DNA of 64,000 bases from Pocillopora damicornis. Its lineage: Eukaryota. A program made the position numbers and the translations under genes. This document shows, piece after piece, positions 1,088 to 60,100 of this stretch. Below the pieces are notes generated by a model. It worked only from the letters and a program-made list of their open reading frames with translations. It was not told the origin of the DNA and made no database searches. Each line of letters opens with the position of its first letter. The first letter of the stretch is position 1. The DNA is taken from NCBI RefSeq assembly GCF_003704095.1, contig NW_020844976.1:124001-188000 (forward strand), given 5' to 3'.

Positions 1088-2983
1088 GAAATAAACCGCT
1101 TGAATGAGGAAAATTCAAAACTCAGAGATCGCATCAAAGTTTTGGAAGGAAAGGTGTGACTATTAAATCTGAAATAATCTTCCATCATTACAATGGTTTT
1201 TCATTTGGTATTACTTAAAACGCTTTTTAAACAAGATTGATCCCATTTTTGTCTGGTCTTCATAATTTGACAACTTGTAGTCAAAAGCAAAGCAGACCTT
1301 TATGAAAAACTGATCCATGTTTTTCGTTTGCCTTTTTGTTTAGGCAACAAGTGCTATTGGTGAAAAAAGTAAACTTCAAGCTGATCTGGAAAGTACCCAA
1401 GCAGCTTTGAAAGCAAAAGGCAATGTTAAGGTTTGTCCAGTACCTGACATATCTTTAAGATTCGGTCAAATTGTTGAATCATACTCATTTATTTTTTATC
1501 CCTTTAACTCCCAAGATCTGATTGGTAATTCTCCCCTCTAGCTGCTACACATTAAAACTAGTTACAATAATGTGGTGTTAGATGAAGGTAACAACCTATA
1601 CCTGATGAGTCTGAGTAATCTCATTACCTTTTTGTTGGATAATGTATTAATATTATAGAGAGAAGTTACATGTTAATACAGGTTAAAGGAGGAACCTTTA
1701 ATTACAAGTAGCAACTGAAAGCTTCTTTAATTTTCTGATTCTTCTTCTTTCACAGGGACATGGCAAAGAACTTGCTGACCTGGAGGAACAGATGGCTGCT
1801 ACTAAATTAGATCTGAAAATGGTAATGACAAACATGATGATGGGTTTTTATAGAAGTCCATATCAAACAATTTTGTTTTACGTAATTTTCCCTTTTATTA
1901 CAGACAAAAGAAAAGGGCTCTACTCATGCTGCGTCATTGCATGATGAGTTAACAAACACCAAGGTGAGATATTCAAATTTGTTACTTAAACACTTATGTG
2001 ATCATAAAAAAAAAAGTTACTTAAGAGTCAATCTTTTTAATCCTTTTGTTCAGTGCATTATCTTCTAGGTAGAAGTGTGTGCATACCCTGTCTTACTCCT
2101 TACCAATTTCCACATATTGGTGTTAAAATATGACTGAAACTAATTTAAAAAAGTAATTGCTTGTGATTCTAGAGTTAGCAATTTTGTATGGTAATTAGAT
2201 TTTAAAATGATATGCCTAAATGTTTCTGTTTTAATTTTTAATTTCTCCTCTTGTGTAGCATGAGATTCTAAGGCTTCAACATGATTTAGAAGAAGCACAA
2301 AAGGTAAATAATCTCTTGTACAGTACACAGGGAATCTGGTTTATGTCACTGCTATGTTTTTTAGTCTTTCTCTTTGCTGGAAGAATGTTGCCTTAAAACT
2401 TTTCTTGTTTTTTCAGGATCTTGCCAAGAAATTTAATGAAACAACTCAATACAAGAACATGAAGCAGATGTTGACCTCAAAGAATGACCAGATTAAAGAT
2501 TTACGTAGTCGCTTACGCAAGTGAGTTTATGTGACTCCTCTTGCTTTGCTGCAACATGTTGTTACAAGTAATTACTTAATACCAGTGGCTGCTTTCTAGA
2601 TAGTCTCAGTAACTTTATACTTCCAAGATAAATCTTTAAGCCTGATTTTAAGAGTTACAGTGAGGGTCTTAGTTCTAAAACCAGTTCATTTTAAGGTCAT
2701 AAGAATAATGGAAATGATCACCTACTCATGAAGCTCTCAATTGGTAAACAAATTCTCCTTGTCAGCACCTTGGGAAATGTACAGAGAACAGTATGGAGAA
2801 TCTGCAAACTGATGTTAGGGTATAAAGGGACAAGTTATAAAATTCCAGACACTCAGTGTTGCCTCTTTGCTGGTGTGCCCTACATGCATGTATCATCTTT
2901 CTTAGAATAATGAAGATTCAATTGACTTAACTAAGTACTTAGGCCATGCTTTGTCATTTTCCAGATATGAACCTGACACCTGA
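1088..2983 (+). CDS. LZTFL1: Leucine zipper transcription factor-like 1 (BBS17), 3' exons only; the gene begins upstream of the window
   Basis: GT-AG exons at ~1088-1153 (EINRLNEENSKLRDRIKVLEGK), ~1344-1430 (ATSAIGEKSKLQADL...), ~1756-1821, ~1904-1963, ~2259-2303 (HEILRLQHDLEEAQK), ~2417-2520 (DLAKKFNETTQYKNMKQMLTSKNDQIKDLRSRLRK) and 2965-2983 (YEPDT*). This matches my recollection of the LZTFL1 C-terminus (KKFQQTAAYRNMKEILTKKNDQIKDLRKRLAQYEPED). Confidence 0.92.
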
Positions 2984-3643
2984 AGAAATGCTTTGTGAAT
3001 TGTGGCATCCAAAGAGAAGTCAATGAACTTATTCCATGTAATTTTGAGCTAGCTTTGCTACAAACACTTACTACTGACTTAGGCTCAAACTGTTGTGTAG
3101 TGTTCTGGCTGAGAAAAGTTCACTGAATAATTACTGAAGTTCTTTAACGCTGTAGAAAGAAGTATTTCAAGTGATCTTGTATTGATTTTTTTAAAAGTTA
3201 ATGTAAGTTATATTACTAGCCAAAACATTATATACATGAAGAGATGTTTAAAGGAAAAAAAAAAAAATGAAAATGGCAATTGAATGAAGCAAGTCAAGGA
3301 AGTGCAAAGCAATTAACAATTAAATGTTTGTCTCTTTATTATTTATTACATGTAGGTGTTTTGTCCTGTTATGCGTCGAATAATAAACCAGGCATAGTCT
3401 TGTGCACATGGATTTTATTGCGAAAAGGTTGTGTTTTAAATATAAACAGCAGCTCTGCATACTCAAATGACACCACCTAAAGAAATGTGACAAGTTCAAT
3501 TTTTAACTTGCAAACTGCCTTGTAAATTTTACAGGTCTGGCAATTTATATTGATCACAAAGCTGTCACATAAAGCAGTACACAAGCATCCCCTCTCTGAT
3601 TTCCCATTTATTTACAAACTTCAATCCTACTCTAAATGCCTTT

Positions 3644-5443
3644 TCAGTGTTTTGGTCTTTGATACAACCATACACTGTCAATTCCTTCCTCAATCATATC
3701 TGTTGGTTTCCAGTTTGGTAATGGAAAGCGACAAGCTAATATTTGAGCATCATCCTTCATTTCTTCCTGGAATTTATCTTGGAGCTTTGGCATCTACATA
3801 TTTCCAAGTAGAAAGAAACAATTATTACACAAGTTCAAAAAATAAATATTGATAACGGCATTAATTAAGAGCCACCATTAGCCCTTGTGAGTAATCAAGG
3901 ATAGTTTAATATATTACTATGTGGTTCAACTTTCCCTTTCAATCAGAGTATTTCAAACACAACATAGTTTTTCCCTGTGTCTCAGGTTATGGCCATTAGA
4001 GATCTGATACAAACCTTTTAGGGCTAATATAATGTAAAATGAAAATAAGACTGTTTTAAAAATTGTTTAACCAGCATAACATTACCATCTCTGAGACTCC
4101 AAATATTAGAATAGTGTCAAATGTTGACAGGTTAACCTGTGAATAAATGGAAGAAAACCCAGTCAGGGTCCAGATGATAAAGAAAAATCTGGTATCCTGT
4201 GCTACAAGCTGTGAACTTTTGGTTACCATGGTGAGAAGCAAAAGTTGTCAGCAAAAAGACCTCCAACTAGAGTTACAATATAAACGACAGAAACATATAA
4301 ATTAAAACACCTTCCACAAGTCAGCTCTTGAAAATGTAGCTTTGTGATGAAGTCCCTGTAACCTGGCCTGTAATCTTGAGTACCAAACCAGCCAGTGGTT
4401 TAGTTCATAACCATGAGCTTGGTAACCTTGTCTAGCTGCAGCAATTACCTATCAATTAAATAAAAGGATCCAAAATTTACATAGAATGATTTTCAACTTG
4501 TATGTTGTATATTTCTGTTCCACCTTGTTAATTGCCAGAGCAAGCACAATAGGGGACCCAGAGGGACCGTCCAAGAGGTCTGGACTCTTTCCTCAATCTG
4601 ACCTGTGAGATTTTTTTTTTATTGCTTTTAGTTTGACATCAATACCATAAAAAAACTAGGATTACTTATGAACCCCTTAAAAACCCTTGGAGTGACCAGC
4701 ATCTAATTTCTCCTGACATAAATGCAGCTGAATCATTCATTAAGATCATAGAAATAAAGGAAATGATCACCAATCTAAGAAGCGAATATTGAAGCGATCT
4801 TCACTGTAATGAACTCTATTTAGCAGTTACTTTAGTAAAAATAAGGCCTTAAAAAAAAAATTCAGTATGGGATTTGACCTTGAAACCTCTGCAATACCTG
4901 TGCAGTGTGTTACCAGCTAGTCATTGTGTTGGTTCGTACTCTAAGAAGCATTGAATGTTAAATGAATTCTCCTTGTTAGATGAGGAGTAAGGAGAAAATG
5001 GATACTGATGTTAAGGTGAAAAGGGCGAATACTCATCCGGCTATTTTTTTTCCGGTACACAACTGTTAATGAGGGGAGATGGGGGCAGGTGTGGGTTGGT
5101 GCTTAAAGTAATGTTAGCCCCTCCCCATCAAACATTCCTGGGTGACATTGAAAATGATACAAACCACTCTCCCGTCCCCACTCCCCAAGTCCACCAATGT
5201 TGATCCGTTATGCTTGGAAGCTTGTCCTATTCGTAATATGTTAGCAATTTGTCTCTCTGTGGCCGGTACGTATGGAAGACAAATTTTTCGTAAAGCTGGC
5301 GTTACAAATGGCGTGGTCACCAGAACAATTCCAACAGCTGCAGCGCCTGTAATTCCGAGGACTACTTTGCCTAGTTTAGATTTAGTTTTGGGATTTCTTG
5401 CGTCCTCTTGTAACTCGAATCCCAGCTGATTCTCAGGGCTCAT
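3644..5443 (-). CDS. FAM173B: FAM173-family mitochondrial protein-lysine methyltransferase (ATPSCKMT/ANTKMT-like), 4 exons
   Basis: Exons 5443-5165 (N-terminal TM segment, [17 protein letters not shown] motif [10 protein letters not shown]), 4448-4311 ([25 protein letters not shown]...DLWK), 4136-4086 ([17 protein letters not shown]) and 3793-3644 (MPKLQDKF...[11 protein letters not shown]...VWLY...*). An alternative in-frame ATG lies at 5515. FAM173A versus FAM173B orthology cannot be resolved by eye. Confidence 0.9.
4790..4925 (-). mobile_element. Degenerate SINE-like insertion nested in a MITE-like repeat
   Basis: gaagcgatcttcactgtaatgaactctattt...aataaggcc-polyA...gggatttga...ctctgcaatacctgtgcagtg interrupts the 4672-5025 repeat. 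A related fragment lies at ~54150-54225. Confidence 0.45.
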
Positions 5444-20675
<15,232 letters not shown>

Positions 20676-41176: not shown

Positions 41177-44100
41177 ATGATAGCGTATACATCGTTATTT
41201 GCTATGATTTTTGTCGGCGGTCTCATAGTTTCTGTTCTCGCTCAGATCCGGAAAAAACGTCGAAGCAAATTTCACACTGTACGGAGTTTACTGATCCACT
41301 ACTTTATCAATCGCTTTGTGTATCTCTTGGGAGCTAAAGCAAGAAGACGCCTGGAAAAAGACACAAAAAGTTTTCCTCAAGTTCAAGAAACATTTTTGTT
41401 GAACATTCTCAGGAAAAACTCAAAGACTAAATATGGCAGAGAATTCAAGTTTCAAGAAATAAGGAGCTGCCGGGATTTTACTGATGTTCATCCCATCACC
41501 AAGTATGATCACTACAAACCATTTGTGGGTAAGTGGAAAGATGAACGAAATATGAAGCCGGGTAAAAGAACAGTCTGCATGTGACGACTGTAATAGCTTA
41601 AGGCATATACAGGTTTGCGCTTATCGGTTAGTAATCACGAATTTGTCACTGACCACTCCCAAGTTAAAGAGGCAAGACCTTGAAGCTGATTTTATCCAGC
41701 AGTGATCATTCATAGAAAATAGATTCGCGTTATCTTGCTAGGCGTAATATTGAATAGAGTAATATATACGCAAAAAAAGAATGATTTGAAATATTCAAAT
41801 AATTTATTTTGGTGAAGAAATAAAAAAACAAACTGATGTTTTTGTCTGGTTACAGAAATAAATCAAACCTCTGGAGAACGTTCTTGGATAACTTAAACTC
41901 TGAAATACGGATAAGCCATTGATACTGGTCAATACAGAGATTAATATTTGTTTCATTCGTTGATCTGTTCCTTTCTGACGAGCATCTTGCGCCAAAAGTT
42001 TTTAATCATTTCACAACAGCAATTCATATTGATATTTTCTGAAAAAATGAAAAAGATAAGGATTGTTTTCTATTGTTTTTGTGGCTTCTTCCAGCTTTGA
42101 AGAGCACGGAAAAGATAGATAAGAAAACAGGAATTCTCTAACTTGTAAAATTTTCGATGAAACCTTACTTTATCCCTAAAAGCAGAATTTGAGATACAAT
42201 TTTAGGATAATTTGGTATTCGCGCTAGGACAATAAGATTTTATGCCTGAGAGTTCTTTATTGAATATCAAAAAACCTCTTCCGTAACTCATCAAAGTAAA
42301 TGTTTTAACCAAGTTTATAAATTTAATTTTCACCATAGATGAAATTTATCGAGGAAAGACGAATGTACTGACCAATCAAGATCCTTGGATGTTGGCGGTA
42401 ACATCCGGAACAACAGGAAGAAGCTGTCTTATTCCCAAGACACGAAACAATTCTCGAGTATTCGTGGAATACGGATTCTCCGTGGGACTTTACCACACTT
42501 TGTTTAACGTTCTACCCCTGGTGAGCAGAAGTAATCGTTAAATGAGATTAAAACATTGCCACACAGGATGGAAAGAATAACATAAAATCCTTCTTTTTGC
42601 GGTCCCTCAAGTGTTCCTGTGTTGCTTCAACGGAGTTTTTTTTACGTCAGGTTAAGAATTATCCTTTTTTGTGTGCTTAGCTTTCATGACCTCGATCTCC
42701 ATTTAGGAATCGCAACAGAAAGCAGTCATACGCCGCGTATGGCGATATTGGCAATAGATAGAGCTTTAGAACACGAGATTAGCACGAAAAGCTAAGGGTT
42801 ATGCAAGTGTGGGTAGTCATGTGAACCACAAGCAATTATGGTGCGGGTAGAAATTTCTAGAATTTTTATCTCTAATTTTACATTTAAAATCTAATTTTCC
42901 AAATCTAATTTTCCAAATCTAATTTCACAACTGACAACTGCATTATTAATGACTAATTTAATGGCATCTGAGCGATCAATACGCCAAGGGCACGCAATTT
43001 ATCAGCATGGCAGGCCGCACGGGCTTGAATTTCTGTACTCAGAATGTCCTGACCAAGTCAGGCGGCCGTGGCCGATTAATCTCTCTTTACCAGAAACCCT
43101 GTAACATGATTCATCTTTCCTTAGGCGGACAGCTTACAGAAGTCTCTTAAACTGTTTCACGCTCCTCAAGTAAGATGCTCAGAAGGAGGGATTCCAATAG
43201 GACCTTCAACTTTAGCGCCTTCATTACAGCTCCACGCCCTGTCCACTCCCCGAGTGCACCTTGACGTCCCGTCTGAGCCCGCTGGACTTTATATTCACGT
43301 CTTGTTTGCACTGAGAGATAGAGACCTGGGTGCGATTCTGGGCAATTTTGCGTTTTGGATTCACGGGGTTTTCGTCTTCCTTGAGAGAAACTGGAAATTA
43401 TTGGTGCAAGACTTGGAGAAAGGTGAAATCAATATGGATCTTGACATAACAGATGGAGTTCGAAAGTAAGTATTATGAATTCAACCCAAACGTTCCCTCA
43501 GAATATCAACTACTTTTTTGTTGTTGTGTGATCATAACTGATTGTATCTTCTTTGTCTGCCTCTTATTTCCAAGAGAGCTAAATAAGCTGCTAAAGCCAG
43601 ATAAACAACGAGCAAATGAACTAAGGGTGGAGTTTCAGAAGGGCTTTGATGGAATCGCCAGGAGAATTTGGCCACACCTTGCATATGTTCATGGAGTAGT
43701 GTCAGGTGAGTTCTCGTCACAATATTGTCGCATGTTTCGAAAATATCAGCTTAAATTACTTACGCTTGTCAAGTTTTAACCATATGAATGATATTTGTAT
43801 AAAAAAGAATCCTGCTATTGCAACCATCATTGGGCCATCAAAATTTGACACCATTAACGGAGTATCAGCTTTCCTCACATCTGTTATTTGTTAAGTCACA
43901 CAGCGCACTCCCCCCCCCCCCCTCCCCTCGGAAAAAGGTTTTTGAAGGAAGGGCTGGTGCCTAACATTACAAAGAACAACTACAATGGAGAGTAACGATG
44001 TGGTTTAGAGAGCAAAAGACTGGACTTATCCTGTTTGGGGCATAAAACTTGGACGCATGTAGGAGGGGGATGCAGTCGTAGGGCGTAAGGAAAGACTTGC

Positions 44101-46531
44101 AGCATGTTTTGCACATCAAAAAAAGAGAAAATTTCCATGCTGCATCTTCTTCCCTTTAAGGTTCTTCTGAACTTTATGCCACGCAGTTACGGGAGCGCTA
44201 TCTCAAGGGTGTGGCACTGTGTTCCACCATATATGGAGCAACTGAAGGATTGATTGGAGTGAACTTATGGCCACTGAACTCGGAACTTTGCTATCTCCTT
44301 GTACCTCGCTCAATGTTCTTTGAGTTCATACCACTGGAGCATACTCACGAAGAACAACCGAAGGTATTTGAAAGAGCTATCTTGTTTCTCACGTTCAAGC
44401 AACGAAATGTCACTTGATTTCAGAATAAACATAACCGCTCAAAAAGAACGTCCATGAACAAACGAACCCAGAGATCGCTAGCACTTCATATATTCTGACA
44501 AGTTAGGCAAGACAGGCCGGTTATTAAAACGTATTTGCTTCATCTTGCTTTGTGATTGGTCCAGAAAACTTGTGCCATCTTCTCAACCAATGAGACGCCA
44601 GACGAACATCACTTGTGACCTAATCACCAGTGTTTTCCCGCGCTTTTGGTTGTTTGCCCGACTGTTTTAGCTTTGAGTTCTTAATGGCTTATAATTATAT
44701 TTTTATTCGTTACAATTGGCCGCAGCGATTATTTTGGTTTCGGCTTTTTGACAGTCAATTTATAATTGCTCTTAAATTTTTCCAGTGTTAGTCAAAAGTC
44801 TACTTTCCAGCGTTCATAAAAGCCGACGTTTTGAAATGTTTGGCTAACTTTAGGACCATTAAGAATGTTTTTTTTTTAAATAAAGACTAGCTGGCAGCCA
44901 CGTGCTATAAAGACTGAACAATTTCCGTTACAGCCTTGTTAAAGTGGTTTTTTTTTTTTAAATGGGCATACTGTTGTGATATGATCCCATTTGTGAATGT
45001 ACTTCTCCCATGAAACGACAAAATTGTCATCTCTAGTGACAATTATTCCGGATCTCCTTTACTTAGGTCATTCTTTCTATCACTCATCCTTAAAGTTGAT
45101 GGGATATCACACACCGCCCCCTTCCCCTGAAAAGAAACGTTAGTTTATCCCTGGTGGTGTAATGCATGACATTCCAAACAACGGCTACGAAGAGACAGTT
45201 TAGCCATGCACATGTCATATTTTTTACAGACGCTGTTTGGTGATGAAATCGAACCCGGTTGCTTATACGAACTAGTGGTAACCACACTGAGCGGTTTGTA
45301 CCGTTACAGGATTGGAGATGTGGTGAAAGTTGTCCGTTTTTACAACAATTGCCCGGTGGTAGAGTTTCAGTACAGACAAGGTCAGCTATTAAACATGCGC
45401 TCGGAGAAAACGACTGAGACGATGATGTACGAGGCAATTACGAATGTGCTCCGAGGGAAAGGCGAGAAATTTAACCTCGTGGATTACACATGCGCAGAGA
45501 GCATTCTGTTGGATTTTATCCCAACGAAGATGGATTTCGTTAAGGAAAATATTGGCCAGGGTAAAAACAACAACCACAAATGCAAGGCTGACTTCGATGA
45601 TGTTAAGCCATTCTACATAATTTTCTTGGAGCTTAGTGCAACGCGAGACCCAGAAGAGAATAGGCTGCTTTCACAGGAGGTAAGAATCAAAGCTATCTCT
45701 TTGTCTCCTCACCTCTTCTGGTAGGAACTGTAGTTATAAAATTTGAACTGCTGAGGAAGATGCTACCACAGGGATAGGTAGATGAACGAGGTCCAGAGCT
45801 TTCAACACCATCATTATCGCTATGATCGTTATCGTTAGCACTCTCATTATAAATTTCTCCATTATTATTTTTACACCATTGTCATTACACTCTTATCATA
45901 GCGTCATCTTGACCGTTGTAAATAAAGCAAACTTCCGATGTTGTCAAAAAACTAAAAACCATAATAAACACAAAGGCCAATCAGAACAAAGCTTGCTTTC
46001 ATCATTAGCCAATGAGAACTCAGAGTAAAACCAGGTAAACTGCATAAGACGCAGGAAAACGTGGGTGACCAAATCGAGATTTATTTCAGTTTTACATCTG
46101 ACTTGTTGAGAAGATGGCACACGTTTTCTTGACCAATCACAGAGATAATTTCAGTAAAACAATCTGAATCCAGGATAACTATCGTCACCTAATTAGTTAC
46201 TACTCGAACACATAATCGCGTTTGTGTAATTCAGCCTCGCATTTATGTCTGTTGCCTTTTTAAAACTGTCACTGATTTTTCCTTTTAGTTGGACCACGCC
46301 CTTTGTGAGGTGAATCCATTTTATCTCATTCGTCGTGAAAATGGCGGCTGTATTGACAGACTCAAAGTTTGTTTGGTCCAACCAGGTACGTTCAAGAAAT
46401 TTCGCGACTTTCTACTCAAAGTCACACCAACAGCTGTCAACCAACTGAAGATTCCGCGGAAACTGACGTCGAAAGAACAACTGATGTTCTTTTGCGAGAA
46501 TTCTGGCCACAGAGCACGTTTAAATAATTAG
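41177..46531 (+). CDS. GHDC: GH3 domain-containing protein (adenylate-forming GH3 acyl-amido synthetase family), 7 exons, about 633 aa
   Basis: Exons 41177-41528, 42339-42520, 43125-43465, 43575-43705, 44161-44363, 45230-45679 and 46289-46531 join in frame. ATP-binding motifs TSGTTG, YGATEG and LYRYRIGD are present, as are a C-terminal QLKIPR and an N-terminal hydrophobic segment. Confidence 0.9.
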
Positions 46532-50800: not shown

Positions 50801-53800
50801 AAATTATTTCATGCATTCCTCTATGGATTCTTAAAACTCTTAGTTAACCATTATGCAGTGTACCCACACACCTGGAAATCTGTCATGAACTTCATTCCCA
50901 ACATATATTTTTAAATCTTTTTTTCATTACTTTCTGTTTAAGAACTCCAAACATACTTGCAGGTGTATAATATCTGCAACTTTTGAGCACCATTTTGCTG
51001 ATATGAGCAGATTATTGTAAGAACATTTTTCATAAATTTCCATATTTAAACAACATAAAAACAGGCAGGTTGCCCCCCTATGATCCTTTAAAAGAGGTAA
51101 CCATGAGAGAATGTTCTAAATAATGTGAATTAAAACATAGAGTTTAAAGGGAATCTCCAACATGAGACCAAAAGATGTAATAGCACAACAGAAATCTGGC
51201 TAGCCATCCTACTCTGACTGTTACAATTCAAAATGTTTATAATTTAATTATAAAACATACATACACTTTCTGACTTGTCCTCTTGAAAAATTTTTTCTCT
51301 GGTGACTGAATACACCAGACCACCCTGAATCATTCCTACAAAACACAAAAAACATGAATACTGACTTATGTTCTGTTCAGCATTGGAGGTTGAATGTGGG
51401 AGAAATAAGAATTATTGCCACAAAGTGCCTTGAATAAATAAGAAGTTTATCATTGAGTTGCAAGGGCAGCTTTCTTAGCCAAAAATAACCATCTAACATA
51501 CACTAAAGGTGGTAATTAAAACCACAATACCAACTTGCTATATCTTTATTATATTGAAATAGAAAAATAATCACTTCAGGCTTTTTCAGGCAACAGTTTC
51601 AGCACTTTATTATATTTATTGTACATGTCTGCCTGTGGTAAAGGTCAGATTCCTTTATGTAAAGTTCTAAAATGAGGCATCAAAAAGAAGAAAACATTTA
51701 AACTTTGAATATAGTTATGGTTTTCATAATTGAATACTAATTGAATGCTTACCTGGAAACAGAGAAACAAGTGAGAGAAGCTGTGAGCAAATGTTACTAA
51801 CTGGAAATCCATGAAAGATGACCTGTGATAAAGATGTGAAAAGTATACGTATGTTAACTTCAAATTACAATTGAAAAATCCTTATTAACAACATAATATC
51901 ACTGTGTCAAGTAGAAGAGAAGTATAGTGTATGTAATGAAAACATATAAATTTCTTTTAGAACTTCTTCAAGACATGGCATACAAAAGTTGTGCCTCACA
52001 TTGCTTGTAAATATTTTGTAATTTTCAGTCTGTTTCAGTTTGATACACTAAATACATCAAATATCACAGGACAATGCATGAGACAAAATTATATGAAAGT
52101 TAACCTCTCTAGTTTAAAACTTTGTGATCAATTATGCAAAAAACACACACCTTTCTTTCAAGGAGAAGCAGTTTAAAAAGAGCTAAAATCTGTAAAGTTG
52201 AAGAATATAATTTATTTTTTTAATTAAGTTTTTATGTTATATAAACTAATGAACCATTTTTTACTTCTTCTTTAGCTTAAGAATTCTGTTAATTAAACAT
52301 GTAAAGTAGTTTTTATGACAGAACTGCTTTTACTCACCCGATGTCTGAACTTTCTAACTAATTCTACAGCTGAAAAACCTAACAATAGGGAAAAAACAGT
52401 TACCAAAAAAACCCTGGAATTGTATAATCTATAACCTTGGCATGACACCATTACTTATGGTATGGTTTAATTGGGAAAATTTTATAACCACTATTCGTTA
52501 TTAATATAAAACCATGAAAAACTCACCAATGAATAGTAAAGATTCTTCTGATATCAGACTTGGTGAAACAGTCATGTTTAAATTTCTATATAGTTCCTGA
52601 AAACCCACACAATATAATTTTGAATTAAAAGAAACCGAGTTATTAGTGATAACAGGGAAAGATGTCAAAACAAAGCTTTCACAATTTGTTTCTAGTACAG
52701 TTGCGTCTGTGCGGATATCAAGTACCTCTAAAATTCCTGTTTGAGAGAAATCCTTTTCTTCAAAATAGAGTCTGGTAGCAACTTGCAGCTTTTCTCTTAG
52801 GTATCCATAAAGTGGCTGATAAAACAAGAAAAAATTATTTTAATAATTGTGGTTGTTTAATGTTTGTCTAGTTCTGTGATAAATTGTAAATTGAATTGTT
52901 ATTTTTCAATTATTGTCTTCATATTTCCAGTCTTTGTCAAGTAATGGAGTCTTACAATTGAATATCACCTTAAAAACAAAGATGATCTTCAAACAAATGA
53001 AAACTTTCAAGTTATTCTTCTAAGGATCTTTATCAATTAAGTTAGTGGCAGGAAGAAGATGATTATCAATTTTATGATAATCCTTACACTAGAACTACTT
53101 TTTGTAGGTTTATAAACTATCATTCTCATTAAATGTAAAATAAATGATTATAAATAATTATAAATAATTAGATATTAGTATAACCTAGAATATACTACCC
53201 CCTTCTTAAAAGGTTAAATATCTAATCTAACATATTTATTTTTTTCATTGTGTAGTGGTACATTTTGACCCCCACTGCTTGGTAATACTACATGTTCTGT
53301 ATTTGAGCTAGCCTACAAAGAATTTGCATTGTTGTGTTTTTTAGGCTACAAGTGGCAGGCACAAAGTGTTCTTGAGAGACAAGTTGCGTTTTGCATTCTC
53401 ACAGCACTTGTCTCTGCTTGCCTAGAAAAAGCAAAAATGACACTCAATCTGCAGGCTGAGTTGAAACAACAAGTTACCTTTCACTTAAGTAACTTGTGTA
53501 CTCACCAAGCAGGACAGGACACAAATACTCTTCTGTACAGTGCTTCTGGTCACATCCTCACTTTTAATTTTTAAGTCCTGTCAACATAAAATGAATTAGA
53601 AACCCTCATTCCAAATTCACAATAAACTCTGAAATGTCTCATTCCCATCTCTAATTTTTAGGAAGCAAAACATGGGCTGAACAAACACTTCATGTGTGCC
53701 CCCATCTGGCTAGGAAAAAAGTACAACAGCATTCTCTGTGAGTCTGAATATTCACTTTTATAACAATGCTTCCTCAAGTTATAATATTATTTGTGAAAAC

Positions 53801-54692
53801 TTCTGCTCATGTTGTTGGAACTCTGTTCTTGTCACCAAAGACAGCCCTTTTCAGATATATGCTAACATTGATAATAATATTTGTACATCATACCTATATA
53901 TGTACTTTGTTTATTCGCATAAGCCTTCCTTTAACTCATCATTATCTGAATTAGAGAAATGAATTATAACAACCTTACTATCAATCTGCTTGTAACAAGA
54001 AATTCCAAAAATAGTTGACTGTGGGTTCTGCCTATTGTCTGCTGTGCTGAGACTTGGTACATGGAAGAAAGTTGTGTCTACAAATTAATGAAAATCAGTA
54101 ACTTGATTAACAGAAGATTTTAGATATATGAAAATTCACATATTTGCACTGCGGTGGAAAGATGAAATTAGGAGATCCTCGCAGCTAAGAACACTACTGA
54201 AACGAGTAGTTGTAAATAGGACCTGATTGATTAACAGAGTTTTTAGGCTGCACATTTCTAGTATTGTAAATAAAACAGCCCGAGACTCAATGGATGGCTG
54301 TATAAGCGATGCTTGAAATGCGCGCTATAAATCACCACCAGACTAAATGAGGAGTTTTCTGGGATAATACCTTGCTCACAGTTATGGGCTCCATCTGGTA
54401 AAGCCAAAAACGGCAGAAATTTCCATTCACTCGGAAGTATTGAAGATTGAGAATTTCTTTGCTTTCCAAGCGGTGGATACAAAAACTCCACCTGCAATTT
54501 ATGGAAATATTAATCATAACGACGAAAACAGGGAAACAATGTCGTATTTTAGTACAGATTTTGGATGCTTCTCTTCAAAGCTGATACTTTCGAGCAAATA
54601 ATCGGGACCTATTTTACCTCGGATCCTCGCTGATGATGGAATCCGACCACCACGATATGCAGTATGGCCCTCTCTGGATCGTGGTCAGTCAT
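47855..54692 (-). CDS. AVL9: Late secretory pathway protein AVL9 homologue (DENN-related), many exons
   Basis: Exons read MTDHDPERAILHIVVVGFHHQRGSE | VEFLYPPL...LPSEWKFLPFLALPDGAHN | ...IFGISCYKQI | VTRSTVQKSICV | PLYGYLREKL...YFEEKDFSQ | ILALFKLLLLERK | FGFPLAIFTK | HPYLSLQQMELL | LSTADLRFADYL | WDGSDEWIRAQF ... stop at 47855. Confidence 0.93.
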
Positions 54693-54698
54693 GTTTAC

Positions 54699-54776
54699 AT
54701 TTCAGCTGATTCCCAGCTGTTGTTTATTGCGAGACAAGCTGTTTAAGAAGACCATCTTCATAAAGCCGCCATCTTG
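54699..54776 (-). promoter_or_regulatory. AVL9 core promoter/5' leader motifs (YY1-type plus TCAGCTGA)
   Basis: GCCGCCATCTTG at 54765-54776 (CAAGATGGCGGC on the minus strand) and ATTTCAGCTGATTCC at 54699-54713, just upstream of the ATG at 54692. Confidence 0.5.
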
Positions 54777-55470
54777 AATAAGAGAGCGTGTAGCATGGGG
54801 AAGAGCATTATTTCTAGTACCCAGATTTCTCGTTTCACTAAATCTAAACTATGCACGAAACACCTACTCCACTCCATGAGCAAACCTTTTTCTACCAGAA
54901 GCTCCCTATCCCCCTCTCACAACAACAATGGAAATACAAGTTTGCTTCATGGTTGGAACTGTCTTGAGTCACCCTCCTTTTGACATTGATTTTACAACAG
55001 CGGTGTCTCAGTGAACCCTGTCACTCCCAAGATCTTTTCTATCTGTCATACAATTCATATGATGTTATTTAAGAAAATTTGGTATTGGATTGACTAGCAA
55101 TCCCTAAATTGATATTTTTCTTTATTTTCATCACTTATCTGCCCTATGCTGCATTAATCTTGCTAAGAGAAATTCTGTCTTGGTCCTTTAAGGGAGGTTA
55201 AGGGTTAACAATGTAAAGAAAAGAATTTTAAAAGTAAAAACATGTTTTCAATACAAGTATAGTTATCACAATTATAAATAGCAAGACTCAGATAAGAATG
55301 ATAAAGTTTACTTTAATGGTTTGCCTTACTGTTTTCAACACAGGTGGTAATTGACAGTTTATTTATCATAACCAACAATGTGTATTCATCCATGTTTAAT
55401 TTAAAAAATTAAAAGTTTGTGTTTTTTCATGTTGTGTTGAGTTTGAGAGCCTCAGCATAAGATCTACTGA

Positions 55471-57099
55471 TTATTTCTTTGGATCTTCTTTTCCAACTTT
55501 GGCAAAAGGACACCCTGAATCAGAGGCTGGACACTTCCTTTTTGCACCAGCTGGCAACACTGAATCAGCTGGCTCCACAAGAGGCTTTCCTTCACTCTCA
55601 ACAGCTTTAAATGGACAACCATCTTTCTGAAGTACAGGACACTCCTCAGCTTTCTCATGGCCAACACTGTGAATGACTTTCACGGTCTTCATCAGAGCTT
55701 CTTTATGGTGGCAGTCCTTGTCACTGCTTGGCATCTGCGACAGCTTACTGTGGATTTCTTCAATTGTTTTGGCATCCTTGAAGGCACATCCTTCTTCAAA
55801 CTCCGGGCATTTCTTAATTTCTCCCAAAAGAGCTTCATTCTCCGTGTTGGCAAATGGACACCCTTCCTTGAAAGCAGGACACTTCTCCTTCAGTTTACTG
55901 ACATCAGAGGTAGTAAAACCTTCTAACACAGCTGCTGGTGGCTCTATCAAAGGTTTTCCTTCCTTGTTGGCATCTTTAAAAGGACAGCCTTCCTCTGTCT
56001 TAAACACAGGACATTCTCCAACCTTCTCTTCCAACTTTTTGGACTCAGAATGAACAGCCTTCAGCATGCTGAGTAGCTGCTCATGTGCCTCTCCCGTGTG
56101 GTGCTTTGATTCTGGCATCTTGGACAATTCTTCAACCACTTCCTTGACATTTTTAGCATCTTTAAAGGGGCATCCTATCTGGAACTCGGGGCATTTTTTG
56201 AGTTCTTCCATGAAAAGATCTTTTGTCAGATTGGAATAAGGGCAGCCTTCTTTAAATGCAGGACAGTTGTCCTTCAATGTTTCATTATCATGCTGAAGGA
56301 AGTGAAAAAGAAGTTTATTTGTGTTTGTTTTGTTTTCTTTTTTTTCATGTAAATTGTTTATCAAACTTACGCGTAGATAGTTTACTACAGGGTTATACAG
56401 AAATCATTCCACTTTTATGAACATGTAGGGTTTTTAAGAGATGTTTTTAGAGCAAATTAGGAATTTCTTGCAAGGTTATTGCATCGATTTTTGCGATTCA
56501 AATTTCTGGGCTTAACATTGCGTGATTAATTGTTGTCACACTTCACAATCAGATGGAGAGTCACGTGGCTAAACACTTGACCGGAATTTTCCGACTTCCC
56601 TGATCTTCAATGAAACTGAAGCCCAAAACTCATTAGAAAAAGGAGATTTGATACCACTACTCACTTAACAACTATTTATAGCGTTCGAGAAAGTAAGCTG
56701 ATGGTTCTGATGATAAATTTATCCTTGAAATACAAACAAAAAAATAAGTTTAATTTACTTATCAATGACTGGCGAGAAAGAAACCATCGGTCGTCGAAAT
56801 CGGATTTGCAATTCGCTGGCTTTTGACTGAGAGATTAGATCACGGACTTGAGCTTGGATCGGTCCTTAAAAACTTGAAAAAGACATGACGATTCTTTGAC
56901 TAAATAAAGGAACAATGCTGAACAGCACAAACAACAATGGTCCCCTGATCTGTTGAAATCTTGACTTACACCTGTAGGGTGTCACACAGTGATCACTGAA
57001 AAACAGTCATGGTACCTTTAGGAAATACTGTAATCGCCTTATCAAATCTAGAAGACTTAGAAAAAACGGGATGAGCTTGCTTACCTCAGTTCCTGCCAT
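55471..57099 (-). CDS. Stand-alone Cys-Pro repeat protein, paralogue of the heme oxygenase N-terminal array; no HO domain and no TM; about 278 aa
   Basis: Main exon 56292-55471 is preceded by the acceptor CTTCCTTCAG and encodes HDNETLKDNCPAFKEGCPY...GCPFAKVGKEDPKK*, collinear with the start of the HO protein. The inferred 15-nt first exon 57099-57085 (ATG GCA GGA ACT GAG|GTAAG) splices in phase 0. Confidence 0.8.
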
Positions 57100-57139
57100 G
57101 ACTGCAAACGACGCTAAACAGAGCAAAAGAAGAAATGAG

Positions 57140-57170
57140 CCATAAATAACACGTGATGGTTTACGTCACA
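57140..57170 (-). promoter_or_regulatory. Candidate core promoter of the Cys-Pro repeat gene
   Basis: On the minus strand TGACGTAA (57168-57161), CACGTG (57155-57150) and TATA-like TATTTAT (57148-57142) lie 45-70 nt upstream of the inferred ATG at 57099. Confidence 0.45.
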
Positions 57171-60100
57171 GCTGTTATGTGCAGGAAAGTCACGAACACG
57201 GAAAGATCGAAACCACTTGAAAGAACAACACGAAGACTGAAATAGTAATTGTCGGTTTGTTGATGAATATTGTTTATACTCTTTACGCCAACCTTGTCAT
57301 GAAGGAATCGGGAAAGGTTTTCATGTGACCCCATTCTATTCTAAAACAAAAAACTTGTCCCAAAGGCAAGACTATTGTGAACACCACTGTCTCTCTGTTA
57401 TCAATTAATTGTACGCGTAATGAAGTACTGAGTTGTACGGAAATCTTGTCGAAACTCGTTTTGCACAAGATTTCATGAAACCTACGCCATGACTCTGAGG
57501 AAATATTGACGTTAGTAAGGTCTAAGTTCCGTTTCAGTCACTAGCACTAAACTTCAAAGCCTTGCTGAGTTTATTCACAGTTTGCTTTTCTCACAAGTCT
57601 TTTAGTATGCTGCTATTGAATTTTCATTTTTTGTGCCCACTGCTCCGATTCTGGAATATTGCGCAGGCTATCGGTACTTTCAAGGTTTTTTTTATATAAA
57701 AAAATAAATTAAAAAAAAAAAGAGGGAGAGCTCGGCACAGATGGAATGTGAGACTAAAGCTCACTATAGAAGTAGCTTGTCCAAGAAACGTTTTGCGTTC
57801 AAGAGCTACTTTGATCCTGTGTTTTAAAAATGAAAATTATAATTAAAAGAAGCGCTGCACCTTAGAATGTCGAGACTTTACGACTTGAACATCGATGACA
57901 GTGAAGGACTGACGAACCAGAGGGGGGGGGAGGGGTTTTCAGAATCTTTCAATGAAACATCAAAACAAAAGAACAGCAAACCATCTTAAGGACAATTGGC
58001 CCTTTGGAGTTCCTTAGAATTTTTCGTTTGATTGGCAAGCTCCACACCTCTTGATTAATTATAGCAAGGAAGCCTGGAGAGAGTTGCTCTCCCCAGACTT
58101 TCCTCGGATTTCACTATCGCGGTTTGTGGTAACTATCGTCTTAAAAAAGTGCGACATGACTGAAGAGGCTACGTTTCCTGCGAAGAGACTACGTCTGGTC
58201 TAAACAAACAGAACGTCGCTTTTCAAAGGAACAACTGGTATGTGTTTTTAAGATTTTTAAGGTAAGGTGCATGCTAGAAACTGCCCCTGTCTGATCGTTC
58301 TAGCTGGACGCAGTCCGTGTATAATTCTAATGAAAACGCTTTATTGATAAATTATGTAATGTTAAATGTATGTACTCCTATCGATTCCGATTGTCTTAAA
58401 TTCTAGTTTCAAATTCATAGTTCATGTTTAGAATTTAGTTTTATTTCGGTCAGGTTTTTTGAAATTTTAACTCCATGGATATGCTGAATGGCTGGTCACT
58501 TAATTCTGAGGTTAAGCTATACACAATCTTAATCAGTGTCTGCCACCTTAATTAAGTCATAAAAAAGTTAATGATTAAAATGAATTTTCACTGAATTTAA
58601 AGAAGTTGTCACAGCAGAATCTGAAACCAGGTAACAAAAACTTTAGTTACTAACTTAGTGAAAGTGAGAATACTGGACGACAGAACAGGCTCCAAAGCGA
58701 AATAACAAATGATCCCCGGATCACGAAATGGTTTGTACCTCTGGCGCTTGTGCTCTGGCGCGGTGCTCGTTTCAATACCCCCTCCCCCCTCTCCCCTCCC
58801 CCTCCCCCCTCCCCTCCAGTGACAAACTCTTTGTTTCGGTTTGGCATCTCCGTCAGATTTTGAGCGATTCTATTCGTTTTCGGACTCATCCGTTTCATCG
58901 ACGACGCTTAGGTCCTGTTAGACAGTTCCATCCGACTTTGATTTTGGAAGGGTCTACCTTTACGAAACTTGTTCAATCCCTCAACTACGTGATCGCTTTT
59001 TACTGACGAGGGAAAACAAGCGGATTCTTGGAATAACTTCTTATGTTTTCAGCAAACAAACAAAATAACGAAACAAAATCAAAATAAGCCGGTAATATTT
59101 TGCTTACAACCGCAGTTAGTTAAGTGTAAAGTTGTGCTAGGAAAGATATATCATTTAAATCATTTAATTTTTCATCAAAATAATAATAGTGCAGGGTCAT
59201 GTGTAAAACCAGCTTATGGCGAAAAAGATACATCCTGTTTACAATGTTACGAATGAAATAATTTTAAAACATGTAAGAAACATCGCGATTTACTGCCGGC
59301 TTAAGGACTAGTTAGTGTCATTATGTGAAACATCTGGAAGTGGGATCATAATCCTTTAATTGGAACAGGACCAACCATTGATAAGTTAAGATTAAAGATA
59401 TCAATTAAAATGATATTTGAATAAAGTGTGAGCTTCTAAATCGAGTGTTTACGATGGAGAAGAGTTGTCGAAGTCGTTACTTGTTTGCAGGGAAAACAAA
59501 AATTAGACGAGGAGTTTTCATTTCAAATTTTACAAATACCTGTTACTACGACAAATGGTTTTCTTTCATCCCGTTAATCCAAACTTTTTGCGAAAATTTA
59601 AGATTATAACTTGCATGTGGGTTAAAAATTGACTTCCAAGCACAATTTACGAGTGAAACAGAAGAATATGCACCACATAGATCCAGCAATGTTTTAGAAT
59701 ATGTTTGCATTATCATGAGTAGTAAATAAGTTGTACAGTTTATCTAAACATGAGATGGCTCACAGATTGACTTAAATACTTATCTAAATATTTATCCGGT
59801 AGTTTCAATTTTCAATTCACGCTAAGTGAATCCGTTCACTCTGGGAGAGTTTCGTTTCATTTCATCCACTGACTCGGCCATACTTGGTTGAGGGAAACAA
59901 TCCAGCGCTCTACGAGTCAGGTGATAAAGCAAGTAACTTTAATTCTACAGGGCAATCATAGACACTATCCAAACGGTATGTAAGTAACTGCTGAAATATT
60001 TACATTTTGGTGATAGATTTGGAGTCTCTTTGTTTGTAAATCTGTAGATTGGAGTTTGGGTGTTAAAGAAAACTAAACTATTTTTAAATAGGCGCTTAGT

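Follow-up and report, generated by a model that had tools for sequence, protein, structure and literature searches.

A free-standing Cys-Pro array gene at the heme oxygenase locus of Pocillopora damicornis: an expressed and conserved duplicate with a putative role in heme handling

A coral genome that carries a heme oxygenase (HO) gene with an N-terminal array of Cys-Pro motifs may also carry, close by, a reading frame that encodes the array and nothing of the enzyme; is that frame a gene, and what would its product do? The question is raised by a stretch of 64,000 nucleotides from Pocillopora damicornis (contig NW_020844976.1, positions 124,001 to 188,000 of the forward strand), the whole of which is called the window here and supplies all coordinates. 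It is almost certain, in our judgement, that window 55471-57099 on the minus strand holds a polyadenylated two-exon gene for a soluble array of about 278 amino acids (the array-only gene), an old duplicate of the HO array that has been kept by selection and modified by gene conversion. The further proposal, in which ferric heme is bound by Cys thiolates of the array together with a nearby His and the free protein acts in trans, is given slightly less than an even chance, and the explanation as a whole is held with even confidence. The exons (57099-57085 and 56292-55471) are separated by a GT..AG intron, and the features of the gene, with their counterparts in Stylophora pistillata where these were compared, are as follows.

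57144..57173, minus strand: candidate proximal promoter or 5' leader block, AGCTGTGACGTAAACCATCACGTGTTATTT; conserved, 29 of 30 bases as in Stylophora.
57085..57099, minus strand: coding part of exon 1, ATGGCAGGAACTGAG (MAGTE), followed by the donor GTAAGC; identical in Stylophora LOC111327423.
56293..57084, minus strand: GT..AG intron of 792 nt, A-rich at about 56316-56352; 79% identity to the Stylophora intron.
55921..56292, minus strand: exon 2, super-repeat 1, with three twin-Cys motifs and a His-bearing helix (hidden Markov model envelope and alignment).
55552..55908, minus strand: exon 2, super-repeat 2, with three twin-Cys motifs, the second being CPEF..GCAF (hidden Markov model envelope and alignment).
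55471..55551, minus strand: tail specific to array-only genes, consisting of AGAKRK, a degenerate seventh twin motif, KEDPKK and the stop codon (55473-55471).
55293..55470, minus strand: 3' untranslated region (UTR); polyA site at about 55293-55297 (RNA contig ends), preceded by ATTAAA at 55317-55312.

The open reading frame (ORF) of exon 2 (55471-56292, minus strand) is uninterrupted over 273 codons and follows the acceptor ttccttcag/CAT at 56293/56292. Its joining to the short first exon is confirmed by three independent sources. The protein of Stylophora LOC111327423 (P0008) begins MAGTEHDNE, its genomic exon 1 reads letter for letter ATGGCAGGAACTGAG followed by GTAAG, and its acceptor is cttccttcag/CAT. 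Contigs of 1.0-1.3 kb from four RNA runs of another coral have ATG GCG GTA GCA CAG spliced to CAT GCT (junction MAVAQ/HAF), and the same contigs include a 5' leader, the full array, the stop codon and a 3' UTR with AATAAA (L013-L016). Among the RNA contigs placed on the window itself, contig 20 of library X6 stops at 56294 but has nine letters more; their reverse complement, CAGGAACTG, matches the end of exon 1, the AG being common to the exon end and the intron end. The 15-nt ATG exon and the acceptor proposed in the first-pass annotation of this DNA were therefore correct, and one contig (that of X6) carries the exon 1 letters expected at the 57085/56292 junction. Database and PDB searches, and the fold prediction of the whole product, used the exon-2 product alone, with exon 1 unjoined.

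Expression, which the first-pass annotation had also supposed, was assessed with contigs from four polyA or oligo-dT RNA libraries from four studies (X1, X6, X10 and X11), placed on 53000-58500, and was established by the spliced junction, a polyA tail and the coverage of the exon. The contigs of the four libraries span 55293/55297 to about 56294. Contig 14 of X11 begins at 55293 behind a run of 23 T (plus strand), which represents a minus-strand polyA tail about 20 nt past ATTAAA; contigs of the other runs end at 55297 (X1, X10) and 55325 (X6). Unspliced or intron-retaining RNA is present (intron-spanning contigs occur in X1, X10 and X11), in an amount that is not quantifiable from contigs; word depth in X6 is 1-5 in the intron versus about 500 in the exon. 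Exon word depth is 188-1596, against 14-62 in contigs of the neighbouring gene in the same runs, a measure that is only indicative. Variants among the runs include a 3-nt deletion at 55706 (X10, X11), which is in frame and removes one His of the HH pair of super-repeat 2, and C254G at position 55533 (X6, X10, X11), which replaces the first Cys of the seventh motif, so that three of the four RNA runs have Gly here, as do the two large database clusters. Both may be alleles or may come from sister Pocillopora species.

The gene is found at the same place in a second genus. Stylophora pistillata LOC111327423 (RefSeq "uncharacterized protein", 278 aa) is a syntenic orthologue with 87% identity, and its locus is collinear with window 64000-46000 across the full 21.6 kb, which includes the array-only gene, AVL9 directly downstream of it and a GH3-domain gene. 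Nucleotide identity to Stylophora is 91% in exon 2 and 78-79% in the intron, the upstream region and the 3' UTR. Over the 200 nt upstream of the ATG it is 78% overall, as against 29 of 30 bases in the block 45-75 nt upstream (57144..57173), which contains a CRE-like (cAMP response element) TGACGTAA at 57168-57161 and an E-box CACGTG at 57155-57150, and which may, from its conservation, be a promoter element. A second conserved non-coding island covers the last 100 nt before the polyA site. The order HO-GH3-AVL9-array-only is kept in Stylophora and partly in two other corals: the third coral has the array-only gene followed by Avl9, the fourth has HO followed by GH3 as in the window. A gene beside AVL9, the position at which the first-pass annotation proposed to look in related genomes, is thus present in Stylophora and in the third coral.

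Array-only proteins of 250-310 aa were found by word search in many coral assemblies and transcriptomes. Among the 17 coral array-only sequences that were compared, none has an internal frameshift or stop, and 16 share a private tail, ..VLP-AG-x-KRK-x-P-A-x-x-x-G-x-P-F-x-K-.., followed by the stop codon (P0030 is shorter and lacks it). The tail of a deeply separated clade (P0032, P0035) is nearer to the HO linker.

The product is hydrophilic (exon-2 product: grand average of hydropathy -0.70, isoelectric point 5.7) and consists of two super-repeats of about 120 aa, each with three CPxFxxGCP[F/Y] motifs and a His-bearing helix, followed by the seventh motif and a basic KRK tail. Its seven twin motifs, C-P-x-F-x-x-G-C-P-F/Y, comprise 13 Cys-Pro and one conserved Cys-Ala. 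Seven of the 13 Cys-Pro are directly followed by Phe, Tyr or Val (GCPF, GCPY, CPVF, CPVL) and four have Phe two residues on (CPAF, CPEF), contexts that agree with the sequence definition of heme regulatory motifs (HRMs). The HO domain (PF01126) is absent from the 273-aa exon-2 product in a Pfam scan, and no hydrophobic segment (highest 19-residue Kyte-Doolittle mean 0.43), signal peptide or anchor was found in it. The initial description of an uninterrupted frame with seven twin motifs and 13 Cys-Pro, devoid of catalytic domain, signal peptide and anchor, is borne out.

That description also held that all motif Cys and the conserved His are retained, which is true of six twin motifs and fails for the seventh. 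An alignment of 44 super-repeats, which takes in distant paralogues of the Pocillopora genome, has C10, P11, F13, C17, P18, C34, P35, F37 and C41 invariant, and G40, C103-P104-F105 and one His of the long helix near-invariant. The fifth motif is GCAF in all corals compared, in array-only and HO genes alike. In motif 7 of array-only genes, by comparison, the first Cys, polymorphic as described above, may be C, G, Y or S and the second C, F or S; the Cys of DKDCHH, fixed in HO arrays, is variable in array-only genes. Since motif 7 and the DKDCHH Cys vary and the repeat Cys are invariant, the functional unit is the two super-repeats (six conserved twin motifs) rather than seven motifs, and motif 7 is decaying.

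Redox-dependent binding of heme is the function that we favour for this unit, because the module is recurrently fused to HO, which is the strongest clue, and because its Cys-Pro motifs resemble HRMs. The same four-Cys module lies directly N-terminal to PF01126 in cnidarians, in Mucoromycota and in protist transcripts. HRMs bind Fe(III) heme via the Cys of Cys-Pro, often with a distal His, and those of HO-2 form a thiol/disulfide switch and aid heme loading into the catalytic site (PMC8808069, PMC2742820). By analogy, the C-x6-C pairs of the array may open and close as thiol/disulfide switches, and the free protein could act in trans by buffering or carrying heme in the cytosol, either supplying the anchored HO or competing with the tethered array of the enzyme.

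Several points weigh against this proposal. The HRMs of HO-2 are dispensable for heme buffering in HEK293 cells (PMC8808069). The Cys-Ala motif conserved in all corals suggests that the Cys matters without Pro, and the spacing of C10, C17, C34 and C41, invariant from fungi to corals, looks more like that of a folded metal site. Some distant relatives carry signal peptides. AlphaFold2 models are of low confidence, with a mean predicted local distance difference test (pLDDT) score of 53.7 for the exon-2 product and 62.3 for one super-repeat with the 44-row alignment; at that low confidence they have short helices around the motifs. The strictly kept motif spacing argues for order, as opposed to the flexible segments in which HRMs lie.

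These same residues would be accounted for if each super-repeat were a folded Cys4 (+ Cys/His) domain binding zinc or an iron-sulfur cluster and serving protein contact or redox sensing, in which case the free protein might be a regulator or decoy for a partner of the HO array, e.g. a reductase. We rate this explanation, the main rival, as possible yet unlikely. C10, C17, C34 and C41, at fixed spacing in all 44 repeats, correspond to the Cys4 pattern (at least four invariant Cys/His at fixed spacing), with the near-invariant C103 and one conserved His besides; the four-Cys core recurs in fungal HOs, and the conserved GCAF would mean that Pro is dispensable. Scans of the product against Pfam and NCBIfam returned sub-threshold matches only, among them faint zinc-finger, Fer4 and glutaredoxin-like ones, so that no significant match to a metal-binding family or structure came from Pfam, NCBIfam, PDB or Foldseek: PDB gave no match by sequence or by a profile of the 44 repeats, Foldseek with the better AlphaFold2 model gave nothing below E = 5, and the ESM Atlas gave no usable match. 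AlphaFold2 also failed to converge on a compact fold, and Pro after three of the four core Cys, with the Phe two residues on, is invariant, an HRM-like Cys-Pro-hydrophobic pattern. A literature search (coral HO with Cys-Pro, HRM in cnidarians, Mucorales HO) returned no paper on the module.

The history of the free array and the HO array can be followed from the HO gene of the window, which consists of two parts.

36384..37763, plus strand: exon 1 of the HO gene, which encodes three super-repeats and the beginning of the HO domain; segment 36414-37132 is the conversion partner of the array-only gene.
38334..39014 (ORF limits), plus strand: ORF holding the second HO exon, with the rest of the HO domain (PF01126), GVCPF and the membrane anchor.

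Both exons match PF01126 (E 2e-11 and 7e-52), and this is the sole HO gene in the genome assembly (4393 contigs, 234.35 Mb); its Cys-Pro array is unusually long. The second exon ends in a single GVCPFAVM before the hydrophobic anchor, at the position of the mammalian HO-2 HRMs. The array-only ORF is an inverted partial copy of HO exon 1 (arms 36414-37132 and 55553-56271, 719 nt) with 85% DNA and 72% protein identity. The locus consequently encodes an anchored array-HO enzyme together with a soluble array-only protein, as the first-pass annotation had it. Elsewhere in the genome there is a second, distant family of super-repeat genes (31-38% identity; contigs C3172 at about 229-290 kb, C2425 at about 96-102 kb and C3714 at about 255 kb), whose copies (loci L004-L012) have two repeat exons about 300 nt apart and form tandem clusters, some with in-frame stops; they are not HO genes, since no other HO domain is present in the genome.

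Selection was estimated against the Stylophora orthologue (Nei-Gojobori), with a synonymous divergence (dS) of 0.256 and a nonsynonymous divergence (dN) of 0.061, hence a dN/dS ratio (omega) of about 0.24-0.27; the 36 synonymous differences on 166 sites and 38 nonsynonymous differences on 653 sites differ with a binomial p of 4.6e-8. Against more distant orthologues dS is saturated (>1.5) and dN is 0.14-0.18. That the 3-nt deletion variant keeps the frame also speaks for selection. As conversion from the HO gene could keep a dead copy open, the test was repeated on residues 1-80 and 241-273, which have undergone no conversion since the Pocillopora-Stylophora split, and gave an omega of 0.25 (p 9e-5). 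Omega is thus far from the value near 1 that would have spoken against function, and indicates that the array-only gene is under purifying selection of its own.

A simple phylogeny with one array-only and one HO clade was ruled out by a maximum likelihood tree of 17 array-only and 12 HO arrays, in which the two kinds pair by lineage (e.g. P0023 with P0011, on one contig, support 100/98). The proportion of synonymous differences (pS), taken segment by segment, attributes this pairing to gene conversion. Between the paralogues of the window pS is 0.59-0.63 in residues 1-80, 0.32 in 81-120, 0.04 in 121-160, about 0.24 in 161-240 and 0.67 in the tail, while between the Pocillopora and Stylophora orthologues it is flat (0.12-0.29); residues 121-160, in super-repeat 2, hold a very recent conversion tract that the HO gene shares. 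In a second species residues 81-240 are near-identical between paralogues (pS 0-0.08), and in a third super-repeat 1 is identical (pS 0) and super-repeat 2 has a pS of 0.5-0.7. The tail is saturated relative to the HO copy in all lineages tested (pS 0.67-0.95). By these values the array body is a mosaic of conversion tracts with the HO array in three lineages, superimposed on an old duplicate. P0015, P0018 and P0030 have an HO-type N-terminus (ME.Y...ES.CPAF) in place of the mini-exon type, from which it follows that conversion tracts can cross the start codon.

Of the partial duplicate kept by selection that had been proposed at first, the partial copy and the selection stand, but the copy is not a young local one. 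A recent duplication is ruled out by the saturated pS of flanks and tail; the gene is old and syntenic, its truncation point is common to a deeply diverged clade, and it is conversion that keeps the arrays similar. The original event was probably a tandem partial duplication, because two distant corals of the deep clade (L020:9932-14153 and L021:3598-8750) have an array-only ORF on the same strand as the HO exons, 1.5-1.6 kb upstream of them. The HO gene of L020 has a single super-repeat, and its array exon begins at the acceptor ccctcag/GTG; read-through or alternative splicing from the array-only ORF to HO is possible in both species, as far as their layout indicates. Conversion, in whichever direction it runs, keeps the free and the HO arrays alike.

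The conversion tracts, which in three lineages cover much of the body, also allow the view that the gene is a transcribed, functionless duplicate whose frame is open only through conversion from the selected HO array. The decay of motif 7 and of the DKDCHH Cys would fit it, as would the fact that six of the ten variants among the RNA runs are nonsynonymous. We nevertheless consider it very improbable: omega is 0.25 in the very segments that have stayed unconverted since the Pocillopora-Stylophora split, only P0030 of the 17 array-only sequences ends early, and conservation extends to features that the HO gene cannot have supplied: the private mini-exon and tail, the splice sites, the candidate promoter block and the polyA region. 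An unprocessed pseudogene is likewise rejected on the open frame in 17 orthologues, omega of 0.25-0.27 and spliced, polyadenylated RNA. That there is no separate gene, 55471-57099 being an exon of a longer HO or AVL9 transcript or an assembly artefact, is the least probable explanation of all, for although the arrangement of the two distant corals lends itself to a longer transcript, the HO gene of the window is 18 kb away on the opposite strand with two genes in between, the polyA tail stands at 55293, no joint leads out of exon 2 in the contigs of the four libraries, AVL9 contigs (same strand, GT..AG introns) begin only at about 54768, an independent assembly, that of Stylophora, has a collinear locus, and the array-only gene is present in many runs.

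Between the HO gene and AVL9, the GH3-domain gene occupies window 41177-45724 (plus strand). Two segments, 55024-55207 between the array-only gene and AVL9 and 54104-54287 within an AVL9 intron, stand out in each of the four runs by a word depth of 2000-15000, summed over RNA contigs, and have many loose ends; an Rfam search of these two bins gave no match, and they are probably dispersed repeats expressed elsewhere.

The existence of the gene is not new, its model being already in RefSeq for Stylophora as an uncharacterized protein. What is new is that the array-only gene is expressed, selected, old and evolving in concert with the HO array, and that heme oxygenases across the eukaryotes are accompanied by this as yet unnamed module: it has no Pfam family, PDB match or paper in the literature searched, yet recurs on fungal and protist HOs, and its characterisation would supply an annotation for the entire family. 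In addition, the locus is a clear example of a complete gene and its truncated copy undergoing mosaic concerted evolution. Heme and its breakdown products (iron, carbon monoxide and biliverdin) are central to oxidative stress, and light and heat put corals with photosynthetic symbionts under strong oxidative stress. Should the array bind heme, it would provide a soluble, high-capacity heme buffer paired with the coral's only heme-degrading enzyme. The broadest form of the proposal, an undescribed, ancient eukaryotic module for heme or metal handling from which anthozoans would have made a two-component system of tethered and free arrays, matched by conversion and both buffering heme and delivering it for degradation, is tentative and rather doubtful.

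Among known genes the nearest is Stylophora LOC111327423, with the same two exons, identical exon 1, tail, stop and AVL9 and GH3 neighbours; it differs in motif 7, whose first Cys is Tyr, and in a second motif GCPL, and as it has no functional annotation it adds no mechanism. The array-only genes of the octocoral Xenia sp. (LOC124439953) and of another anthozoan (P0033, L026) likewise consist of two or three super-repeats, with no HO domain nearer than 10 kb, but they carry one super-repeat per exon, 43% identity and a different tail, and may have a separate origin. HOs of Mucoromycota and protists (e.g. P0077, P0080, P0085, P0067, P0069) share the core CPAFxxGCP[Y/F], about 16-20 residues, CPAFKEGCPF, followed by a ..IP..H segment directly upstream of PF01126 as in the coral; unlike in the coral, the module is in single copy and always fused to HO, with no free-standing version among those matches. 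The closest functional parallel is mammalian HO-2, which like the coral HO has Cys-Pro-hydrophobic motifs on an HO anchored in the endoplasmic reticulum, and whose HRM Cys come in pairs that can close into a disulfide, bind Fe(III) heme together with a nearby His and assist loading of the catalytic site (PMC8808069, PMC2742820). The single C-terminal GVCPF before the anchor of the coral HO is also as in HO-2. The HRMs of HO-2, two in number, lie in its disordered C-terminal tail, whereas the coral has 12-13 motifs in strictly spaced N-terminal repeats, for which heme binding is putative; and unlike that of HO-2, the coral array has a conserved Cys-Ala at one position and is also made as a separate soluble protein.
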